Shown piece after piece: positions 3,975 to 16,425 of a DNA stretch of 64,000 nucleotides (its first letter is position 1; each line of letters opens with the position of its first letter). Both the position numbers and the translations under genes were made by a program. The stretch comes from Tetramitus jugosus (taxonomy: Eukaryota > Protista > Heterolobosea). Under the pieces are notes generated by a model, which saw only the letters and a program-made list of their open reading frames with translations, ran no database searches and was not told the DNA's origin. The stretch covers positions 186,001-250,000 of the forward strand of contig OW569366.1 in NCBI GenBank assembly GCA_937625935.1. Reading direction: 5' to 3'.

Positions 3975-4215
3975 AGGTTTGAGCTCATTCATCAGAGCCA
4001 CCAAATTGTCATGGACTCGAGTCCTACACCAGTTGTGCTTACCGAAATATCTCTGCCAAGTCTTCAGATCAATGCTTGACTGCTGCCGAAAGATCCTTCA
4101 AATGCTTGTCAGTGGTGTAGACTCTTCTTACAGGGTCCTCAAAGCAGAGCCCATATCTTATGTTGTGGTGTCGGAACCGACTTCAATGTATTGAGGGAAA
4201 TTCCAGTGTCACAGG
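3975..4215 (-). pseudogene. Fragment of DIRS-like RT (domains 6-7 and thumb), same family as 12444-13501
   Basis: Reads GISLNTLKS...VYTTDKHLKDL...DLKTWQRYFGKHNWCR...LVALMNE, matching VYTTDKHLMDL...ELKTWQRFIGKYNWCR...LVALMNE at 12444-12806. Confidence 0.8.
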
Positions 4216-9120: not shown

Positions 9121-10079
9121 CTTGAATTTGACCATACATTCTGCCTAAGCGAAACTGGCGGTCTTTGCTAATATCGGCACTCTTGTCCGAGCGGTCAAGG
9201 AGCCTGACTAGAAATCAGGTACGGGAAACCGTGCGTAGGTTCAAATCCTACAGAGTGCGACCTTTTGAGAGTATTGAGTTGAAAGGCTTTATTCATGTAG
9301 ACTACGAGACGTCCGTTCCTCAAGTCCCCCGATTGATTTCTCTGAATTTTTCCTTCACTGATTCTACTGTTGTGGCAATGATACCTGCGGCACTTGGTTC
9401 ACAAATGGAGAATATTGATCGAACAGGTACCATAGCATTAAAAAATACCCTTCCTTAATCAATAGTTGGAGATAGGTGGTCCACGCTCACTCAAAGAATC
9501 TTCCCACCAGGTCAGCTATGCACTGACGAGCCGACTCGTCGTTGTATTGGTGTTGATGGTGATCAAAAAAATCAGTAAAGTTCTTTCTTGTCAGATAGAA
9601 CTTCATTGTTTTGTTGTATTCGGTTATGCTGCACCAACCGTCGGTGTTGAAATGAGTGAAGAAATCAACGGTAACAACCAACATGAACAGAAAATCATCA
9701 GCCAGTCGATATGGGTGCTACACAGAGCTGCAACCCGATGGAAGGTACTACCGACCAAGACAATGAAGCAGTGGTGCTCGTACACGTAGTTCAAGTCCAG
9801 TAAGTCCCATTCCTTCTGCAAGAGTAGAACCTGAGCAGCAAGAGAGAACTGCAATTGAAACTCTAGCGGAACCAAGAAGATCATTCTTATGTGATTTGAA
9901 TGAAGAATCTCGCAGAAGGCCATCAACAACCCAGTGGACTTCGGATGAATCATACCATCGTAGTCTTTGAATACTTTGAAGGGCCTCTTATGTTTTGGCA
10001 GTTTGTGACGACAAGACTTCCCAAACAACACTACCGAGCTCTTTTTGAACTAAAGCCTTTCCTTCCTTCGACAACAAGG

Positions 10080-10280: not shown

Positions 10281-10872
10281 AATTGAAATCCTACTCATCT
10301 TCTTCGAGATTTTGCACAGAGTTGTGTGGAAAGAAGTGGAGTACAGAAGTATTTACAAAGATACTAACAAGCGATGCAATTCAAATGTTTTGTATCGTTT
10401 AGATGGCGACAGATTGGTGGGAATGTGCTCTACTGTCTACCAAGTGACTAGGGTTGGGTGTTGTGACGTGATAGCTATCACCTGATGGTTGGAAGGTGCG
10501 ATCACCATGAACCAGAAATGTCTCATACTCGTATTGTTCAAACTCTTCGTCGAGGGACATGCCCTCAACACTGCTCTTTAACAGATCAGCTTTTTTATGT
10601 GCAGGTTAGCTTAGATCGACTGGAAAAAGCTGTTTCTTTCTTGACGTGTTTTTGAAGAGGCAAAGAATTCACGGTTTTATTATAGATGGTGGGAATGTTC
10701 GTGCTTTGATTGAAAGGTATGGACAAGTACCCAAACTTGTTTGAAGCCATATCCAATTTTTCCGCTGATGTTGTTGATGTTGTGGAAATTGGTTCCTTGG
10801 ATGATATTTGTCTCGAAGTAAGGAACGGTCTGCGTCCCAATTTGTCGTGCTTCATTCCGTGCAATGAATTAA

Positions 10873-12221
10873 TTCTCGATTGCGTCCGCAGAGTGTCATT
10901 GTTGTTTCTCCTTTGTTGTGGTGAAGAGGTGAAGGAGAGTCGTGAGACAGCTCCGTTTCACCCCATTCACATAAATTCTTGCTTTTTTTGGCCACTGCTA
11001 CTTCGCCAATGGCACTCGTTTCGATGCCCATCATACCTGTTAGAAGTTCTTTGCTAGTCCACCGCAGTGGGCTTTCTTCCGTTTTTCCGTTCTTGAGTCT
11101 AACGTTGTCGAACCATATGTCGATACAACTTTCAGCCGACAGTCCCATTAGTTCCTTACTCGTGAGGCCGGGATCTTGTTGGCAGCAGTGTCACCAACGG
11201 TGACACGTGCTGATCGCTTCTTGTGTTCGTTGAGTTGGGGACTCTGTAACTCACAGTCGGGGTTACTGAGATCCAACTCAACTGGATCTTCATTGGTGGT
11301 TGTGCTTCTTGCACGATCCACCATGATTGCTCGGGCAGCAATCTCTTTCTTGACTTTCTTGAACACCTCGGAGGTGTTCAATACTAGCTCGAGGATTGCT
11401 CTGTTACGAGCATCCTCATCAATGTTGTTGTTGGTTGGCTCTTGGGTGACCGTAGTTGGAGTGGCGGGGTGGGACTCCGGCATGGTCGACTCCCAGTCAT
11501 CGGTCGTAGACGGAGTCGAAGGTTCGAATTCGGAGATTCGCTCCGGCGTCCTTGGAGACGGGGATGCGAGGGGAATCCGGTTGACGGAAGCCATATCTTT
11601 TAACACACTGACTTGGTGGCGCAGGTCGTCCACCACAGCCAGTAGCTCTTGGTACATCTTGGTCAGCCTCTTGCTGACAGTCTTGACAGGATCACGTGGG
11701 CGTGGAAGGAAGCGCTTTGCTTCCACCTCCACTGGCATGGATTGAACGTTCCGAAGCAAAGCTTCGGCATACGTTTCGGACTCCATCACAACAAAGGCGG
11801 TGTTGTGCTTCTTGAGCACGTTCTTGACCTTTGTTGTGCCAATCATGGCCTTGATGTCGTCCTCCGTCTTACGTTTGACACCGTGGAGGACAACCTTCTT
11901 GGCACAATCTACGTTGTGCTTGAGTGCTGCCTTGCAGCCACTCATCTTCTTGTTGCGGTTGAAGGATTCAACAAATGGGTAAATATTGTCATCACAACAA
12001 ACCTCTTGGGGCCCTTCTTGATGACTTGGACCCTGGTGAGCAAATCACCAAAATCCAAGCCAATCTTCTTGGCCAAGGCAGCCTTGAGAGTCATCACACT
12101 TTCCAGTGATGATGACCTCCTTGCTGCTTGGTGCAGTTCCTCTTGGTGCTGTGGTCCACACAGCATAGCGTGGATTCTCATACTCACGAACAACAGGGGT
12201 GTGTGTGCGTTTTTTCAGCGG
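10873..12221 (-). mobile_element. Internally deleted non-LTR copy 2 (ORF1 plus last ~85 codons of ORF2), head-to-head with tRNA-Lys
   Basis: ORF1 (REYENPRYAVWTTAPRG..., frameshifted) is joined directly to MGLSAESCIDIWFDNVRLKNGK...LLTGMMGIET...YVNGVKRSCLTTLLHLFTTTK*, homologous to the end of ORF 7517-9139. Confidence 0.88.
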
Positions 12222-12274
12222 CGTGTTCATCAATTAAGAGTGGTCACGACTTTCAAGGTTTCTTCAATATCCAA

Positions 12275-12347
12275 GCCCGTCTAGCTCAGTCGGTAGAGCG
12301 CAAGGCTCTTAACCTTGTGGTCGAGGGTTCGAGCCCCTCGGTGGGCG
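12275..12347 (+). tRNA. tRNA-Lys (anticodon CTT)
   Basis: GCCCGTCTAGCTCAGTCGGTAGAGCG-CAAGG-CTCTTAA-CCTTG-TGGTC-GAGGGTTCGAGCCCCTC-GGTGGGCG; TTTT at 12354-12357. Confidence 0.97.
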
Positions 12348-12443
12348 ATGTCCTTTTGCCTGCGACTGAGCCAATATGACGGATTTTTTTTATTTACAAC
12401 GAGTTTTACAATGTATTTACAATAAACACACTATAAAATACAA

Positions 12444-13501
12444 TCAAAAATCAAAAGAAAGAGAACATCTTGTCATTATATTGCTGAGCATTGCTCTGGC
12501 GATATGGTTGACGACAATTTTGTCAGTGCTGGTGTCTCGCTCATTCATCAGAGCAACCAACTTCGAATGCACCTTCTCATCCTCCTGTAGAGCCCTACAC
12601 CAATTATACTTACCAATGAACCTTTGCCAGGTCTTCAATTCAACACTCTCCTGCTTCAAAATCAGTTTGATCATCAATGATAGATCCATCAAGTGCTTAT
12701 CTGTGGTGTATACACCCTTGACTTCACCTCCAAAACAGAGCTTGTATCCGCTGAACTCTAACTCTTGCTGAGGAACCAGAATGGACTTGGTTACATTGAT
12801 GGGCAATCCTCATCCAATTTGATGTTGGTGTAACACGATTTGATATCAATCGATGCCGCATAGGAGTATCTTTCGACCAACAACACTAGATCTTTGCGTG
12901 TTGGTAGTTTGCAATCCGCCTCTAGAATGTACTTGTTGAGCTCAGTGAAATCCAAGATTTCTCTGGGTCGAGAAGGATCAGACTCTCTGGGTATGATTCT
13001 CATTGGAGCAATGAAATACGCTTCCTCCTTTGGTATCTCTATCAACACACCACTAGCCACATACTCGTTCACTCGAGAATCCATCACCTGGCACATTTCT
13101 CCTTTGATCTTGTTGATGATCATTCGAGACAACTTCTTACGGACAAAAGATTCTGGCTGATAGAATCTAACAGTCATCCCAGTCTTGAGAATCTCCTCGG
13201 CCGATTGCCAGAATGGTCTACTGATCATACCAGTCCTGTTCTTCCCCTTTCCCTTACCTTTCCTTGTTTCTCTCGCCTCAACCACATAGGTAGTGTCCTC
13301 GCCAACATTCATCTGATCATGCTTTGCAGCTTGCTCATTTCTTTGCAACATCTGGATGGTGGATGTTAAATCCGGGACACACTGTTGCTCCTGAGGTTGA
13401 TCATCACTTGATTCCCTAGAGGAGAGTCTCTGGGCATCAACTATTGCGTTAAGTGCTCCAATCAAGTATCCTACTGCTTCACGCCACTTATTGTTTTCCA
13501 T
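12444..13501 (-). pseudogene. DIRS/Ngaro-like reverse transcriptase with central (PFG/YxDD) deletion and frameshift
   Basis: FIAPMRIIPRESDPSRPREILDFTELNKYI...ASIDIKSCYTNIKL (domains 1-3) jumps at about 12805 to INVTKSILVPQQELEFSG (DIRS-type N..KS.L.P.Q..EFLG) and WQRFIGKYNW. Confidence 0.8.
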
Positions 13502-13708
13502 TACTATTGTTGTTATGTTTCAAAAGCAATTATCTTACATCACATCAACTCCTTAAATAAAACCAAACAAACTAAACAAACCAAAACAGTTCCTCATCTC
13601 CAACCCATCGAAACATCAACACATCAAGTCCTCTACATTCCTATTTAAACAAATTGTTGTTCCCCTGTCCAGTAAACCATCACAATTACTTGTTCTTTTG
13701 TTTTTTTT

Positions 13709-14395
13709 ATGTCTGCAGTTAATTGTTTGATAACGATCGATGGTGGGGTTGCACCAAGAAATGCTCTCAAATCAGTAAGAGAATGCATATATATCCTCTC
13801 ATCCACAGAGTGTGCAGGTGCTAAAATAGGCCAAAGTACAGATATGTACAACAGACTGAGGAAGTTGTTGACCAAGGTACTTGTCTTGGATGTGGTCTTG
13901 GATGTGTTTGTTGTAAATAATTGTGTTGCTTGGGAACGTTTTATCCACAGTTGGCTGCGTAACAGGCTTATTGCTGGGGAGGTGTTTGACACCAATAGAG
14001 AGGAGGCAATCTGGTGCTTGAAACATTGCTTTGGAATGCAATTGGATAGCAATGCTTTTGTACCTGTTCGATCGAGGTATTTCTCCATTTTCGTGAATCA
14101 AGTGCCACAGGTCTCATTGCCACAACATCCACATCTTATGGTTGTCTCGGTTCCTGGTCTTGAGAGAGTGTTGTTGTACTTTACCGAGTCTCCGCGATCG
14201 TGGTTCGAAGAGTTCCTCGCCAGCAGTCTCCACACTCATTGTATACTTGACGCATACAACGTGGGTCTTCTGTTGAAGGATACAACAGTAGAATCAGTGA
14301 AGGAGGATCTCGGAGCTACAACATTAACTGGTTGGGTCATCAATAAAACGAGGGCTCAGGTAGTTGACTTCCTTAACTCCATGATGTTGAGGTAG
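13709..14395 (+). CDS. T5orf172/MUG113-type GIY-YIG superfamily protein with C-terminal extension
   Basis: CIYILSS...AKIGQSTDMYNRLRKL...WERFIHSWLRNRLIAGEVF fits the family pattern YI...KIG....R...E..lH..l......GE.F. Intact 228-aa ORF. Confidence 0.75.
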   Translation: MSAVNCLITIDGGVAPRNALKSVRECIYILSSTECAGAKIGQSTDMYNRLRKLLTKVLVLDVVLDVFVVNNCVAWERFIHSWLRNRLIAGEVFDTNREEAIWCLKHCFGMQLDSNAFVPVRSRYFSIFVNQVPQVSLPQHPHLMVVSVPGLERVLLYFTESPRSWFEEFLASSLHTHCILDAYNVGLLLKDTTVESVKEDLGATTLTGWVINKTRAQVVDFLNSMMLR

Positions 14396-14614
14396 ACAGT
14401 ATACAATGAGTATACAACGAGATTGTTGCTTGTCGGATTGTCTCCAAAATATAGGAGGATATAGGATATACAATTACCACAAAAACCATTCAACAATCAT
14501 GAAAAGTTACAATTCTTTGAAGGAGTTGTACTAGAGATTTTTTTTCTCTAAAAAAAAAAAAAACACAATAGAAACTGTAATACAATTAACGCTTTATTTT
14601 GGCGGCAAAATAAA

Positions 14615-16172
14615 CCTCGGTGGGCGATGTTCTTTTGCTTTGGGCGAAATTCGTGTAAAATCCGTTTTTTTACAACGAGTTTTACAATGTATTTACAATA
14701 GGAATATTGGTCAGTGATTTCGACGAGATTCTTTCGGGTTGGCAACTTGCAGTCTGAATCAAGGATGAATTGATTCAGTTCAGAAAAGTCGAGACCTCTC
14801 TTCGACGGCTTGGATCTGATGTTCGTGGAACTACACCAATGGATGCAATGAACAATGGAATTTCTACTAGAATACCCTCCTTCGCGAGTTGAAGTATCAA
14901 TCAACTGAATATTCGAGCCTTTGACCCATTGAGGATCATTGGTTGACGAAACTTGCTGCGAATAATGGCTTCTGGCTTGTAAAATCGAATCGTCATTCCT
15001 TCCTGCAAGATTTCTTGTGGTGTCAGTATGGTCGACTCAGTTTCTCTACCTTCGCAGGAACCTTTTTGTTCTTTTCATTGCCCAGACTAGTAGGCACAGG
15101 ACCAGTAGTTAACTTGAAGCGCTTTGAGATCCTTGTCTAATCCAAAATGCTCCAGCCTTATTAATCCCATCTATCACCCATCAACTCATTTTAATCTATT
15201 ACAAACTATTACAATCCATCAACAGCCATCACACAAACAATAAATAGACACAAAAGAATCTCATGGCCGCACTCAGCGCATTCACTCAAACTTAACCACT
15301 TGTTTCTTTATTGTTTTTGTTTTATGATTAGTTGTGCTATTACTTTTAGATCTATTATAGAGAGAGTCAAATGCAATGTTCAAGCACAAGATTACCCCCT
15401 CTCTATTTGTGTCAAACATTTATCCAGCAATAAACCTGCTACACAGCCAACTGTGAATGAAACCACAATTGTATTCAAAAAACACATCTAGCACCTTGGT
15501 CAACAATCTCCTCAGTCTGTTGTACATATCTGTACTTTGACCTATTTAAGCACCTCGAACCTCGCGGGATGACAACATATAGATACATTGGTGGATAGTG
15601 ATGCTTTTAAACCTGTTAGATCGAGATACTTCTCCATTTTCGTGAATCAAGTGCCATAGGTCTCATTGCCACAACATCTTCATCTTATGGTTGTCTCAGT
15701 TCCTGGTCTAGAAAGTATTGTTGTACTTTGCTGAGTCTCCGCGATCAAGGTTCGAAGAGTGCCTGGCCAGTCAATCTCATTGTATACTTGAAGCATACAA
15801 CGTGGGTCTTCTGTTGAAGGCTACAACAGTAGAATCAGTGAAAGAGGACCTCGGAGCAACAACATTATCCGGTTGGGTCATCAATAAAACGATGGCTCAG
15901 GTAGTTGACTTCCTTAACTCCATAATGTTGAGGTAGACAGTATACAATGAGTATACAACGAGTTGGACCTACGGAACCATCTTGTTGCTTGTCGGATTGT
16001 CTCCAAAATATAGGAGGATATAGGATATACAATTACCACAAAAAACATACAAAATCATGAAAATTTACAATTCTTTGAAGGAGTTGTACTAGAGATTTAT
16101 TTCTAAAAAGAACAAAAAATAGAAACTGTAATGCAAGGAATGCTTTATCTTGGCGGCAAAATAAACCTTGGT
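14615..16172. mobile_element. Unit B: more decayed tandem paralog of unit A
   Basis: Same left end. RT relic EILQEGMTIRFYKPEAIIR / LDFSELNQFILDSDCKLPTRK on -. Nuclease 5' half inverted (about 15372-15590). 15593-16165 closely matches 14044-14614. Ends with hairpin plus CCTTGGT. Confidence 0.8.
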
Positions 16173-16425
16173 CCCATCGTTTGGCCTCTGATTGTTTTTG
16201 GTTACAATTGTGTGTATTTACAATATTGATCATGATGCACCAATGACCGGGAGCTGACTATATGCACACCGAGATGGCACTAGATAGGATCAAACAATGA
16301 CAGCACTGTTGATGCTACACGGGTGGACCTATTGAGTGTCAAAAAAGGCCGTGGATCCCACCGAAAAGCAATCAATAGATCTGATGACACCAAATTCTCT
16401 GTAGAATACAAGCTAGACACATTGT

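Follow-up and report, generated by a model that had tools for sequence, protein, structure and literature searches.

Beside a tRNA-Lys gene in the window (the whole 64-kb stretch of DNA that was analysed) lies what is, with little doubt, a tRNA-Lys-specific element of two genes, one for a reverse transcriptase (RT) and one for a T5orf172 protein, a predicted nuclease. At least three insertions, made separately, appear to be stacked beside this one gene, and we give the whole explanation, including the priming mechanism proposed below, a probability of about 0.45.

The tRNA-Lys locus in the window

The locus is composed of the following features:

12275..12347, + strand: tRNA-Lys(CTT) gene, the target (ARAGORN; own-genome search)
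12336..12347, + strand: 12-nt repeat, copy 1, CCTCGGTGGGCG, equal to tRNA positions 62-73
12348..12443, + strand: unit A left end: element-borne trailer and Pol III-type T-run, ATGTCCTTTTG; short hairpin; motif TTTACAACGAGTTTTACAATGTATTTACAAT
12444..13501, - strand: unit A reverse transcriptase gene, subfamily 1, broken by a deletion (ORFs 12444-12806 and 12791-13501)
13502..13708, no strand: unit A spacer of ~210 bp, separating the two diverging genes
13709..14395, + strand: unit A T5orf172 (GIY-YIG superfamily) gene, 228 aa, intact
14396..14614, + strand: unit A right end, with a T-run/A-run hairpin and the terminal hairpin TTTATTTTGGCGGCAAAATAAA
14615..14626, + strand: 12-nt repeat, copy 2, at the A/B junction
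14627..16165, + strand: unit B, an older insertion, subfamily 2
14627-14700: unit B, own trailer and left end
14698-15343, - strand: unit B, RT remnant
15367-15590: unit B, first part of the nuclease gene, inverted
15592-15936: unit B, remaining nuclease gene, with stops, followed by the right end up to 16165
16166..16236, + strand: decayed repeat copy 3 (CCTTGGTCCCAT...) and ~60-bp left-end remnant of a third unit

The tRNA-Lys(CTT) gene is 100% identical to 24 further full-length copies found by own-genome search. The 24-mer at 12336-12359, consisting of the 12-nt end of the tRNA and an 11-12-nt trailer, recurs at 14615-14638 with 23/24 nt conserved, and no such match is expected by chance (none in 100 shuffles). 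This agrees with an earlier note on this DNA, which had reported the recurrence with one mismatch. The third repeat point of that note, 16166-16172, reads CCTTGGT and is weak as a 7-mer taken alone, but it lies directly 3' of a conserved right-end motif, GGCGGC(A/T)AAATAAA, and is followed by the remnant of a third left end at 16189-16225 (local alignment score 39 vs 20 ± 3.7 for shuffled sequence, ~5 sd). The gene ends of the tRNA-Thr and tRNA-Ser in the 64-kb window are not repeated. Predicted folds of the junctions were no better than those of shuffles (z -0.2 to -1.8).

In the RT gene of unit A, a 220-bp deletion near 12808-12811 (reference positions 534-752) has taken out residues ~243-314 including the YLDD motif, and an intact ORF found elsewhere in the genome, 436 aa long, is matched by the two remaining ORFs over residues 315-436 and 6-242. 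The T5orf172 ORF is intact, with dN/dS of 0.09-0.10 against the intact copies at sites C30 and C15. Both units had been called defective, which is true of the unit A RT but not of its nuclease gene; the absence of RNase H and recombinase, also taken as a defect, is shared by the intact copies.

Units A and B have a common layout, as had been noted, but B is not a copy of A: it is of another subfamily, and the first part of its nuclease gene is inverted. Its RT part is 87% identical to subfamily C40/C35 over 14698-15126, and its RT protein is only 38-59% identical to the unit A type. Both unit B breakpoints are spanned by contigs from four DNA runs of the source organism, in pieces that are short and noisy; among RNA runs, none containing the region was found. 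Contigs from the DNA runs also place the source organism in groundwater and soil metagenomes. As the two units belong to different subfamilies, they represent independent insertions, and the uniform A/B divergence that the earlier note had named as the mark of a one-off duplication was not found.

The intact element and its insertion sites

The full element measures 2507 bp, with intact copies at C30 and C15. These two copies are 99% identical, which indicates recent activity of the element. In both, two genes diverge from a central spacer on opposite strands and no other ORF is present. One encodes an RT of 426-436 aa with YLDD present (C30 copy: Pfam RVT_1, PF00078, 5.3e-19, 69 bits, cut-off 29.6), which extends only 87 residues beyond the RVT_1 match; the other encodes the T5orf172 protein of 228 aa. 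Searches of the two ORFs of the intact copies against Pfam gave no match to RNase H, methyltransferase (Dam), integrase or recombinase, nor were rve, APE or RLE domains matched in these copies. Apart from the tRNA repeat of 12-24 nt, a repeat search returned a subterminal inverted repeat of 9-10 nt and nothing else; LTRs, inverted or split terminal repeats and an internal complementary region were not found by it. The layout with its spacer, presumably a two-way promoter, is kept in all subfamilies and in the metagenomic contig L031.

Linkage of RT and T5orf172 genes, which the earlier note had proposed to look for elsewhere, was found at every site in the genome and in an independent metagenomic relative. 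The nuclease gene has dN/dS of 0.08-0.31 and the RT gene has dN of 0.32 with dS saturated; these values indicate that both genes have been kept under purifying selection. A non-autonomous derivative of ~640 bp, with both ends preserved, occurs at two tRNA-Lys genes, and we count it toward mobilisation in trans. At C40, the nuclease protein is ~89-90% identical to the subfamily-1 copies and the RT only ~60%.

All 10 loci that bear a left end begin directly after tRNA-Lys position 73, involving 8/26 CTT and 2/6 TTT genes; the divergent subfamilies at C14, C16, C28 and C24 fall outside this count. The 10 occupied genes lie on 8 contigs with unrelated flanks, and the upstream flanks have nothing in common save for a different retroelement family; the tRNA genes neighbouring C30 and C15 also differ. 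The element has therefore inserted repeatedly and independently at tRNA-Lys genes, in line with the earlier proposal that a eukaryotic mobile element with an RT targets the 3' end of tRNA-Lys.

At the other side of the element, the right-end motif precedes the 12-mer at 7/7 intact right ends elsewhere and at the A/B junction (the count is of right ends whose 12-mer is intact and does not extend to those of the TTT-gene copies). At C30, C35 and C8, the right end is followed by CCTCGGTGGGCG and then by the native trailer. Downstream of the tRNA, every occupied CTT gene has the element's left-end sequence, which the empty CTT genes share over the first 11-12 nt only. The genuine duplication consists of the 12 tRNA bases 62-73, repeated at the far end before the native trailer; the trailer next to the gene belongs to the element and, contrary to what had been assumed, is not part of the duplication. 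The element thus supplies its own trailer and T-run, so that the tRNA gene survives, and the claim of a restored gene end with a new terminator holds at all occupied CTT genes. Where the element sits in a tRNA-Lys(TTT) gene, the TTT-type 3' end is unchanged.

Tandem stacking, also claimed before, is seen in the window (units A and B and the third remnant) and in arrays at C30 and C15. The tRNA-adjacent unit is the best preserved in 3/3 of these arrays, and every junction between units holds exactly one tRNA segment between right and left end. Copies truncated on the far side (C7, C18 and C37) retain the tRNA-side end; among truncated copies, none carrying a duplication was found, and no 12-mer follows them.

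Two other roles for parts of the element were considered. The 12-mer was rejected as a primer-binding site, being a plain duplicate of positions 62-73 in tRNA sense without a CCA complement. An A-tract at the right end, 14 nt long in unit A and 9-28 nt elsewhere, was not taken as a retro-copied poly(A) tail: it is set back 45 nt from the right end and can pair with a T-run, and slippage would explain its variation equally well.

Relationships of the two proteins

The nuclease-type domain is N-terminal (residues 26-105) and matches Pfam PF10544 (T5orf172) with 25 bits against a cut-off of 20; PF01541 was not matched. Among language-model neighbours, 26/30 are T5orf172/MUG113 proteins. When the core motifs of T5orf172/GIY-YIG enzymes (IY..., KIG, R, E..H and E.F) were compared, Y28, K39-I40-G41, R49, E76, H80 and E91-V92-F93 did not vary among 5 homologues with identities as low as 52%. 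The C-terminal domain, ~125 aa long and conserved, belongs to no known family. An AlphaFold model from the 5-sequence alignment (pLDDT 40.5) was too poor for fold comparison, and a profile search of solved structures with the nuclease gave nothing meaningful.

For the RT, the best solved-structure matches were a caulimovirus-type 'Enzymatic polyprotein' chain, foamy virus and Ty3. A DIRS-type RNase H/methyltransferase region is borne by 37/143 neighbouring RTs, and the family falls on the methyltransferase-bearing side of a split from the rve-bearing (Ty3/gypsy-type) set (SH-aLRT 100%), in a tree without Bel/Pao, copia, retrovirus, caulimovirus and hepadnavirus references. The DIRS-like nature of the RT, stated in the earlier note, is supported in part by this split; a diagnostic domain is absent from the 12 nearest rows of the tree. 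The element shares with DIRS, Ngaro and PAT elements its nearest identifiable RT relatives, the absence of LTRs and a possible life cycle with a circular intermediate. Unlike them, it is far smaller (2.5 kb), has no long terminal repeats or internal complementary region, carries an opposite-strand T5orf172 gene and inserts strictly at the end of a tRNA gene. As the intact copies are without the RNase H, methyltransferase and tyrosine recombinase of that group, the element is, to judge by its coding content, not a DIRS element.

The tRNA-integrating elements of bacteria and archaea are DNA-based and encode integrases of the tyrosine or serine type. In these as in our element, the tRNA 3' end is directly repeated at both junctions, the gene is restored and copies stack in tandem; our element differs in being eukaryotic, in having an RT but no integrase and in adding a Pol III terminator. 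TRE and Ty3 elements insert away from the tRNA gene and not within it. They (TRE5/TRE3/Ty3) and the Dada transposons likewise use multicopy tRNA genes as a safe target, but none rebuilds the tRNA gene end. Dada elements are DNA transposons with a DDE transposase, of which each family is tied to one tRNA species, and they interrupt the tRNA gene with 6-7-bp duplications (PMC3706591).

Penelope-like elements have a telomerase-like RT with a Uri-type GIY-YIG nuclease fused in one ORF (PMC8557442). They resemble our element in that an RT lacking RNase H goes together with a GIY-YIG superfamily nuclease, and in their common (partial) tandem copies (PMC8557442); the RT of our element is of the LTR/DIRS class, and its T5orf172 nuclease has its own gene on the other strand. 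We know of no GIY-YIG/T5orf172 homing genes in eukaryotic nuclear tRNA genes. Those of phages and organelles share the nuclease family and the arrangement of an N-terminal catalytic and a C-terminal, possibly DNA-binding domain, but spread by DNA repair without an RT (PMC10448857). Full-text literature searches found no published description of an RT and T5orf172 element with such a layout, in line with the earlier note, which knew of none.

The metagenomic relative is 48% identical, has the same gene pair and behaves in the same way at tRNA-Asn. In contigs L031 and L102, the gene pair adjoins tRNA-Asn(GTT), with a 23-nt repeat that likewise ends at position 73, and the same head-to-tail junction is present in the Asn family in contig L095. 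The orientation of the element relative to the tRNA differs between the Lys and Asn families. RTs with intact catalytic motifs are conserved across subfamilies and organisms.

Mode of integration and its implications

Tentatively, and at somewhat less than even odds, we favour an autonomous site-specific retroelement that integrates by a nuclease cut and target priming. The nuclease would recognise the T-arm and acceptor end, cutting at the last base (73) and, on the other strand, 12 bases upstream. In the manner of target-primed reverse transcription, the RT would start from the cut DNA end and copy the element RNA, and repair would leave bases 62-73 flanking the insert on both sides. The element-borne trailer and T-run would keep the tRNA gene whole, terminated and still targetable, and new copies would insert beside the tRNA, displacing older ones outward. 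Cutting by the nuclease, an RNA intermediate and priming at the target are the inferred parts of this cycle. The lack of RNase H, integrase and recombinase, together with the far-side-truncated copies that keep their tRNA-side end, is consistent with target priming. The classic mark of that process would be a 5'-truncated copy that carries a duplication, and it is missing here, since the truncated copies have no 12-mer. Because the genes diverge, neither transcript could span the whole element unless the template is tandem or circular. Also against this reading are the grouping of the RT with enzymes of DIRS-type elements, which use circular DNA, and the length of the duplications, 12 or 23 bp being long for a GIY-YIG enzyme.

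Integration as DNA is a rather unlikely reading. A circular DNA with one 12-mer, comparable to attP, would be reverse-transcribed from a longer-than-unit RNA of a tandem or circular copy; the nuclease would cut the 12-mer in the circle and in the tRNA gene, and host repair would join the two through the shared 12 bases. It would amount to a DIRS-like life cycle with the nuclease replacing the tyrosine recombinase. The single tRNA segment at every right/left-end junction, the head-to-tail junction in L095 and the DIRS-type side of the RT in the tree fit this reading, as does the need of a circular or tandem template for full-length RNA of diverging genes. The repeat, 12 or 23 nt by family and always ending at 73 as if carried by the element, the family-dependent orientation and the internal-deletion derivatives that retain both ends also point this way. 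However, no circle was seen, L095 may be a mere tandem junction, no recombinase is encoded, and the unchanged TTT-type 3' ends would need a TTT-specific sub-lineage with its own 12-mer. The word 'recombines' in the earlier note, with its att-type mechanism, accordingly stands as one of two readings that the data allow.

Improbable, but not negligibly so, is homing, in which the nuclease would make a double-strand break at empty tRNA-Lys genes, to be repaired from an occupied paralogue, and the RT would serve some other function or act only as a helper. Homology would be provided by the 73-bp tRNA on one side and by the 12-mer and a similar trailer on the other: the 25 full-length tRNA-Lys(CTT) genes are identical, and many have the trailer A(T/C)GTNCTTTTG, giving homology on both sides. 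T5orf172/GIY-YIG proteins are typical homing nucleases (PMC10448857), and the chimeric copy at C40 points to recombination between copies. Yet an RT that had no share in the spread would hardly be expected to stay conserved with intact catalytic motifs; the right-side homology is only 12-23 bp, and tRNA-Lys(TTT) genes, and tRNA-Asn in the relative, are occupied too. A one-off segmental duplication begun inside the tRNA, or a chance repeat, with no mobile element at all, would account for the shared ends and layout of the two units in the window, but is virtually dismissed by their different subfamilies, by the 10 occupied genes with unrelated flanks on 8 contigs and by a 24-mer match not expected by chance.

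The recognised orders of retrotransposons (LTR, DIRS, Penelope-like, LINE and SINE) each pair an RT lineage with one integration mode. The combination of a DIRS-side RT and a T5orf172 nuclease fits none of them, and the element probably represents an undescribed order-level class of eukaryotic retrotransposon, in which a stripped RT of the DIRS lineage is joined by an opposite-strand, phage-type T5orf172 homing nuclease, integration is at the last base of a specific tRNA gene, the gene end and its Pol III terminator are rebuilt, and sister lineages have been retargeted to other tRNAs. To our knowledge, no other eukaryotic retroelement lands inside a tRNA gene yet preserves its function with a replacement end and terminator. 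If true, the bacterial attL/attR strategy would have been reinvented by a retroelement, its targeting being convergent with that of prokaryotic integrative elements, and RT and nuclease modules would have been recombined more freely than classifications assume. As a 2.5-kb two-protein system with one multicopy safe site, seemingly retargeted between tRNAs, the element is a candidate site-specific insertion tool, and the intact natural copies in the genome make laboratory testing feasible.

Anatomy of the element and its array

The array adjoins a tRNA-Lys(CTT) gene. The 24-mer at window 12336-12359 comprises the final 12 bases of this gene followed by ATGTCCTTTTGC, and a second copy with a single mismatch was found at 14615-14638. 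No match was expected by chance, which confirmed the repetition of the tRNA 3' end described in an earlier note. The third point proposed there, CCTTGGT at 16166, is weak by itself; it was backed by the right-end motif GGCGGC(A/T)AAATAAA directly ahead of it, which stands before the 12-mer at the genome's other right ends, and by a decayed left-end (tRNA-side) remnant after it. Together, these observations reveal an array of unit A beside the tRNA gene, unit B further out, and the stub of a third unit.

When the window's own assembly (26.35 Mb) was searched, element-related DNA was recovered at about 15 sites, including two full-length copies (contigs C30 and C15; 99% mutual identity) with a unit of 2507 bp. 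Only natural copies were compared.

Features of the window array, the full-length unit and a short derivative
Window 12275-12347: tRNA-Lys(CTT) (ARAGORN)
12-mer CCTCGGTGGGCG: tRNA positions 62-73, numbered from the tRNA start
Element's own trailer ATGTCCTTTTG: right after the 12-mer
RT gene: minus strand, 426 aa from ATG; YLDD; Pfam RVT_1 at 5e-19
Spacer: 213 bp between the RT and T5orf172 genes
T5orf172 gene: plus strand, 228 aa; PF10544, 25 bits against a cut-off of 20
Right end: about 220 bp, T/A hairpin and terminal hairpin, then the second 12-mer
Subterminal inverted repeat: e.g. window 12406-12415 and 14575-14584; locus L002:1450-1590
640-bp derivative: G000 C8:418086-418773 (L014/L025/L057)
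640-bp derivative: G000 C8:474780-475257 (L028/L056)

The T5orf172 assignment agrees with the language-model neighbours of the nuclease protein. No third ORF, RNase H, integrase or recombinase was found in the intact 2507-bp unit. YxDD had escaped the first reading because a 220-bp deletion in unit A removed RT residues about 243-314. Folding predictions pair the subterminal inverted repeats of 9-10 nt (GTTTTACAAT close to the left end, ACTGTAAAAC close to the right) across unit junctions, but these folds were no better than shuffles.

All T5orf172 matches in the genome adjoin an RT match in diverging orientation, even in subfamilies at only 53-65% protein identity, so the linkage of the two genes seen in the window holds elsewhere. 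For the nuclease gene, comparison of unit A with the intact copies gave a dN/dS of 0.09-0.10; against the C16 subfamily it was 0.08-0.14. Small fragments of divergent family members, one from the RT C-terminus and one from the nuclease gene, also lie at window 3981-4115 (-) and 9368-9439 (-), near tRNA-Thr(AGT) and tRNA-Ser(AGA); no repeat of these gene ends was found nearby in the window.

Insertion at tRNA-Lys genes

For tRNA-Lys(CTT), the genome carries 25 full-length genes of identical sequence and one gene with a truncated 5' end; a further six genes encode tRNA-Lys(TTT). The element's left end starts at the base after position 73 in eight CTT and two TTT genes; the remaining genes continue into unrelated sequence past a short trailer. 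Where arrays end on C30, C35 and C8, a native trailer, distinct from the element's, comes after the right-end 12-mer. The duplicated part is the 12 tRNA bases only, and the first trailer with its T-run is the element's own. The tRNA genes with an insertion still equal the consensus. Many empty CTT genes (e.g. L039, L042, L038, L047, L052 and L054) have a trailer closely resembling that of the element, A[TC]GTNCTTTTG, and L039, L050 and L055 show faint motifs resembling its left end as well. Such resemblance could reflect footprints left by lost elements or mimicry of native trailers by the element.

Sequence comparison identifies the array units as independent insertions. The RT part of unit B shares 87% identity with the C40/C35 subfamily (subfamily 2), in which C40 retains an intact RT of 410 aa, and is only distantly related to the RT of unit A (subfamily 1). 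The flanks of occupied genes are unrelated, save for another retroelement family upstream of the tRNA genes. The one-off duplication weighed in the earlier note is contradicted by both results. In three arrays (C30, C15 and the window), the tRNA-adjoining unit is more complete than all units farther out, which are deleted or rearranged; this agrees with the whole tRNA gene being the entry point of new copies. This other retroelement family, located just ahead of tRNA genes, accounts for shared stretches (72-94% similar) within the 400 bp that precede several tRNA-Lys genes; examples are window about 10858-12237 and the corresponding flanks on C30 and C8b.

A derivative of about 640 bp with both ends was found at two tRNA-Lys(CTT) genes on C8. 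Between the left 125 nt and the right 330 nt of the element, its two copies share about 200 bp that do not resemble the full element, and their internal sequences are nearly identical. This suggests a non-autonomous derivative moved by proteins of other copies. The C40 copy (G000 C40:275028-277549; L005/L021/L022/L040) is chimeric: relative to subfamily 1, its RT has only ~60% protein identity and its nuclease protein ~89-90%, and its right end is partly inverted. Its composition points to recombination between subfamilies.

Relatives and affinity of the RT

Only four RT matches were found among 5.8 billion clustered proteins, and only eight at 1e-30 among 1.8 billion representatives. On metagenomic scaffold L031, an RT 48% identical to that of the window family and a likewise diverging T5orf172 gene lie between 23-nt direct repeats of a tRNA-Asn(GTT) 3' end. 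In a second sample (L102), the element adjoins a complete tRNA-Asn, and in a third (L095) a head-to-tail junction holds a single 23-mer. The repeated tRNA segment spans positions 62-73 in the Lys family and 51-73 in the Asn family, with a common endpoint; in the Asn family, the two genes have the opposite orientation with respect to the tRNA.

On Logan contig L034 (1877 bp), an RT related at the family level (45% identity, E 8e-58) is preceded by a same-strand 277-aa ORF with a GRF zinc finger in place of the diverging T5orf172 gene. The eukaryotic JGI contig L101 (10 kb) carries an RT (P0009, 409 aa, 43% identity) beside an IML1/DEPDC5 gene, with neither a T5orf172 neighbour nor a tRNA within reach. 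The nuclease protein encoded on ENA metagenome contig L096 matches that of the window at 100% identity, and 28-40% of the region's sampled words were present in groundwater and soil metagenomes (runs X4-X8), which indicates that these habitats harbor the host or a close strain.

In a maximum-likelihood tree, the element-family RTs form one clade (99). A 100%-supported split separates the Ty3/gypsy set from the methyltransferase-bearing side, and the clade falls on the latter. Among 143 neighbouring RT domains outside the family, 37 have a DIRS-type RNase H/methyltransferase region and 17 an rve integrase. The 12 rows nearest to the family bear no diagnostic domain. Within this limited sampling, the label "DIRS-like" of the earlier note is thus the best available reading. 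By the defining tests of each group, the element is not a DIRS, Penelope-like, LTR or LINE element, nor an integrase-based tRNA island. Dada transposons, which likewise target sites inside tRNA genes, differ in relying on a DDE transposase and in interrupting the gene (PMC3706591). Our literature search found no described element with such a layout.

Candidate mechanisms

The anatomy is compatible with two models. In target priming, the nuclease would make staggered cuts at 73/74 and 61/62, and the target would then prime cDNA synthesis. The lack of RNase H and integrase in the element, the analogy with Penelope-like elements and the retention of the tRNA-side end in truncated copies favor this model. 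Alternatively, a circle or tandem-derived DNA with one 12-mer could join the cut tRNA gene via the shared bases, which fits the diverging genes, the single segment at junctions, a repeat length particular to each family, and the lineage of the RT. Between these, we lean slightly towards target priming.
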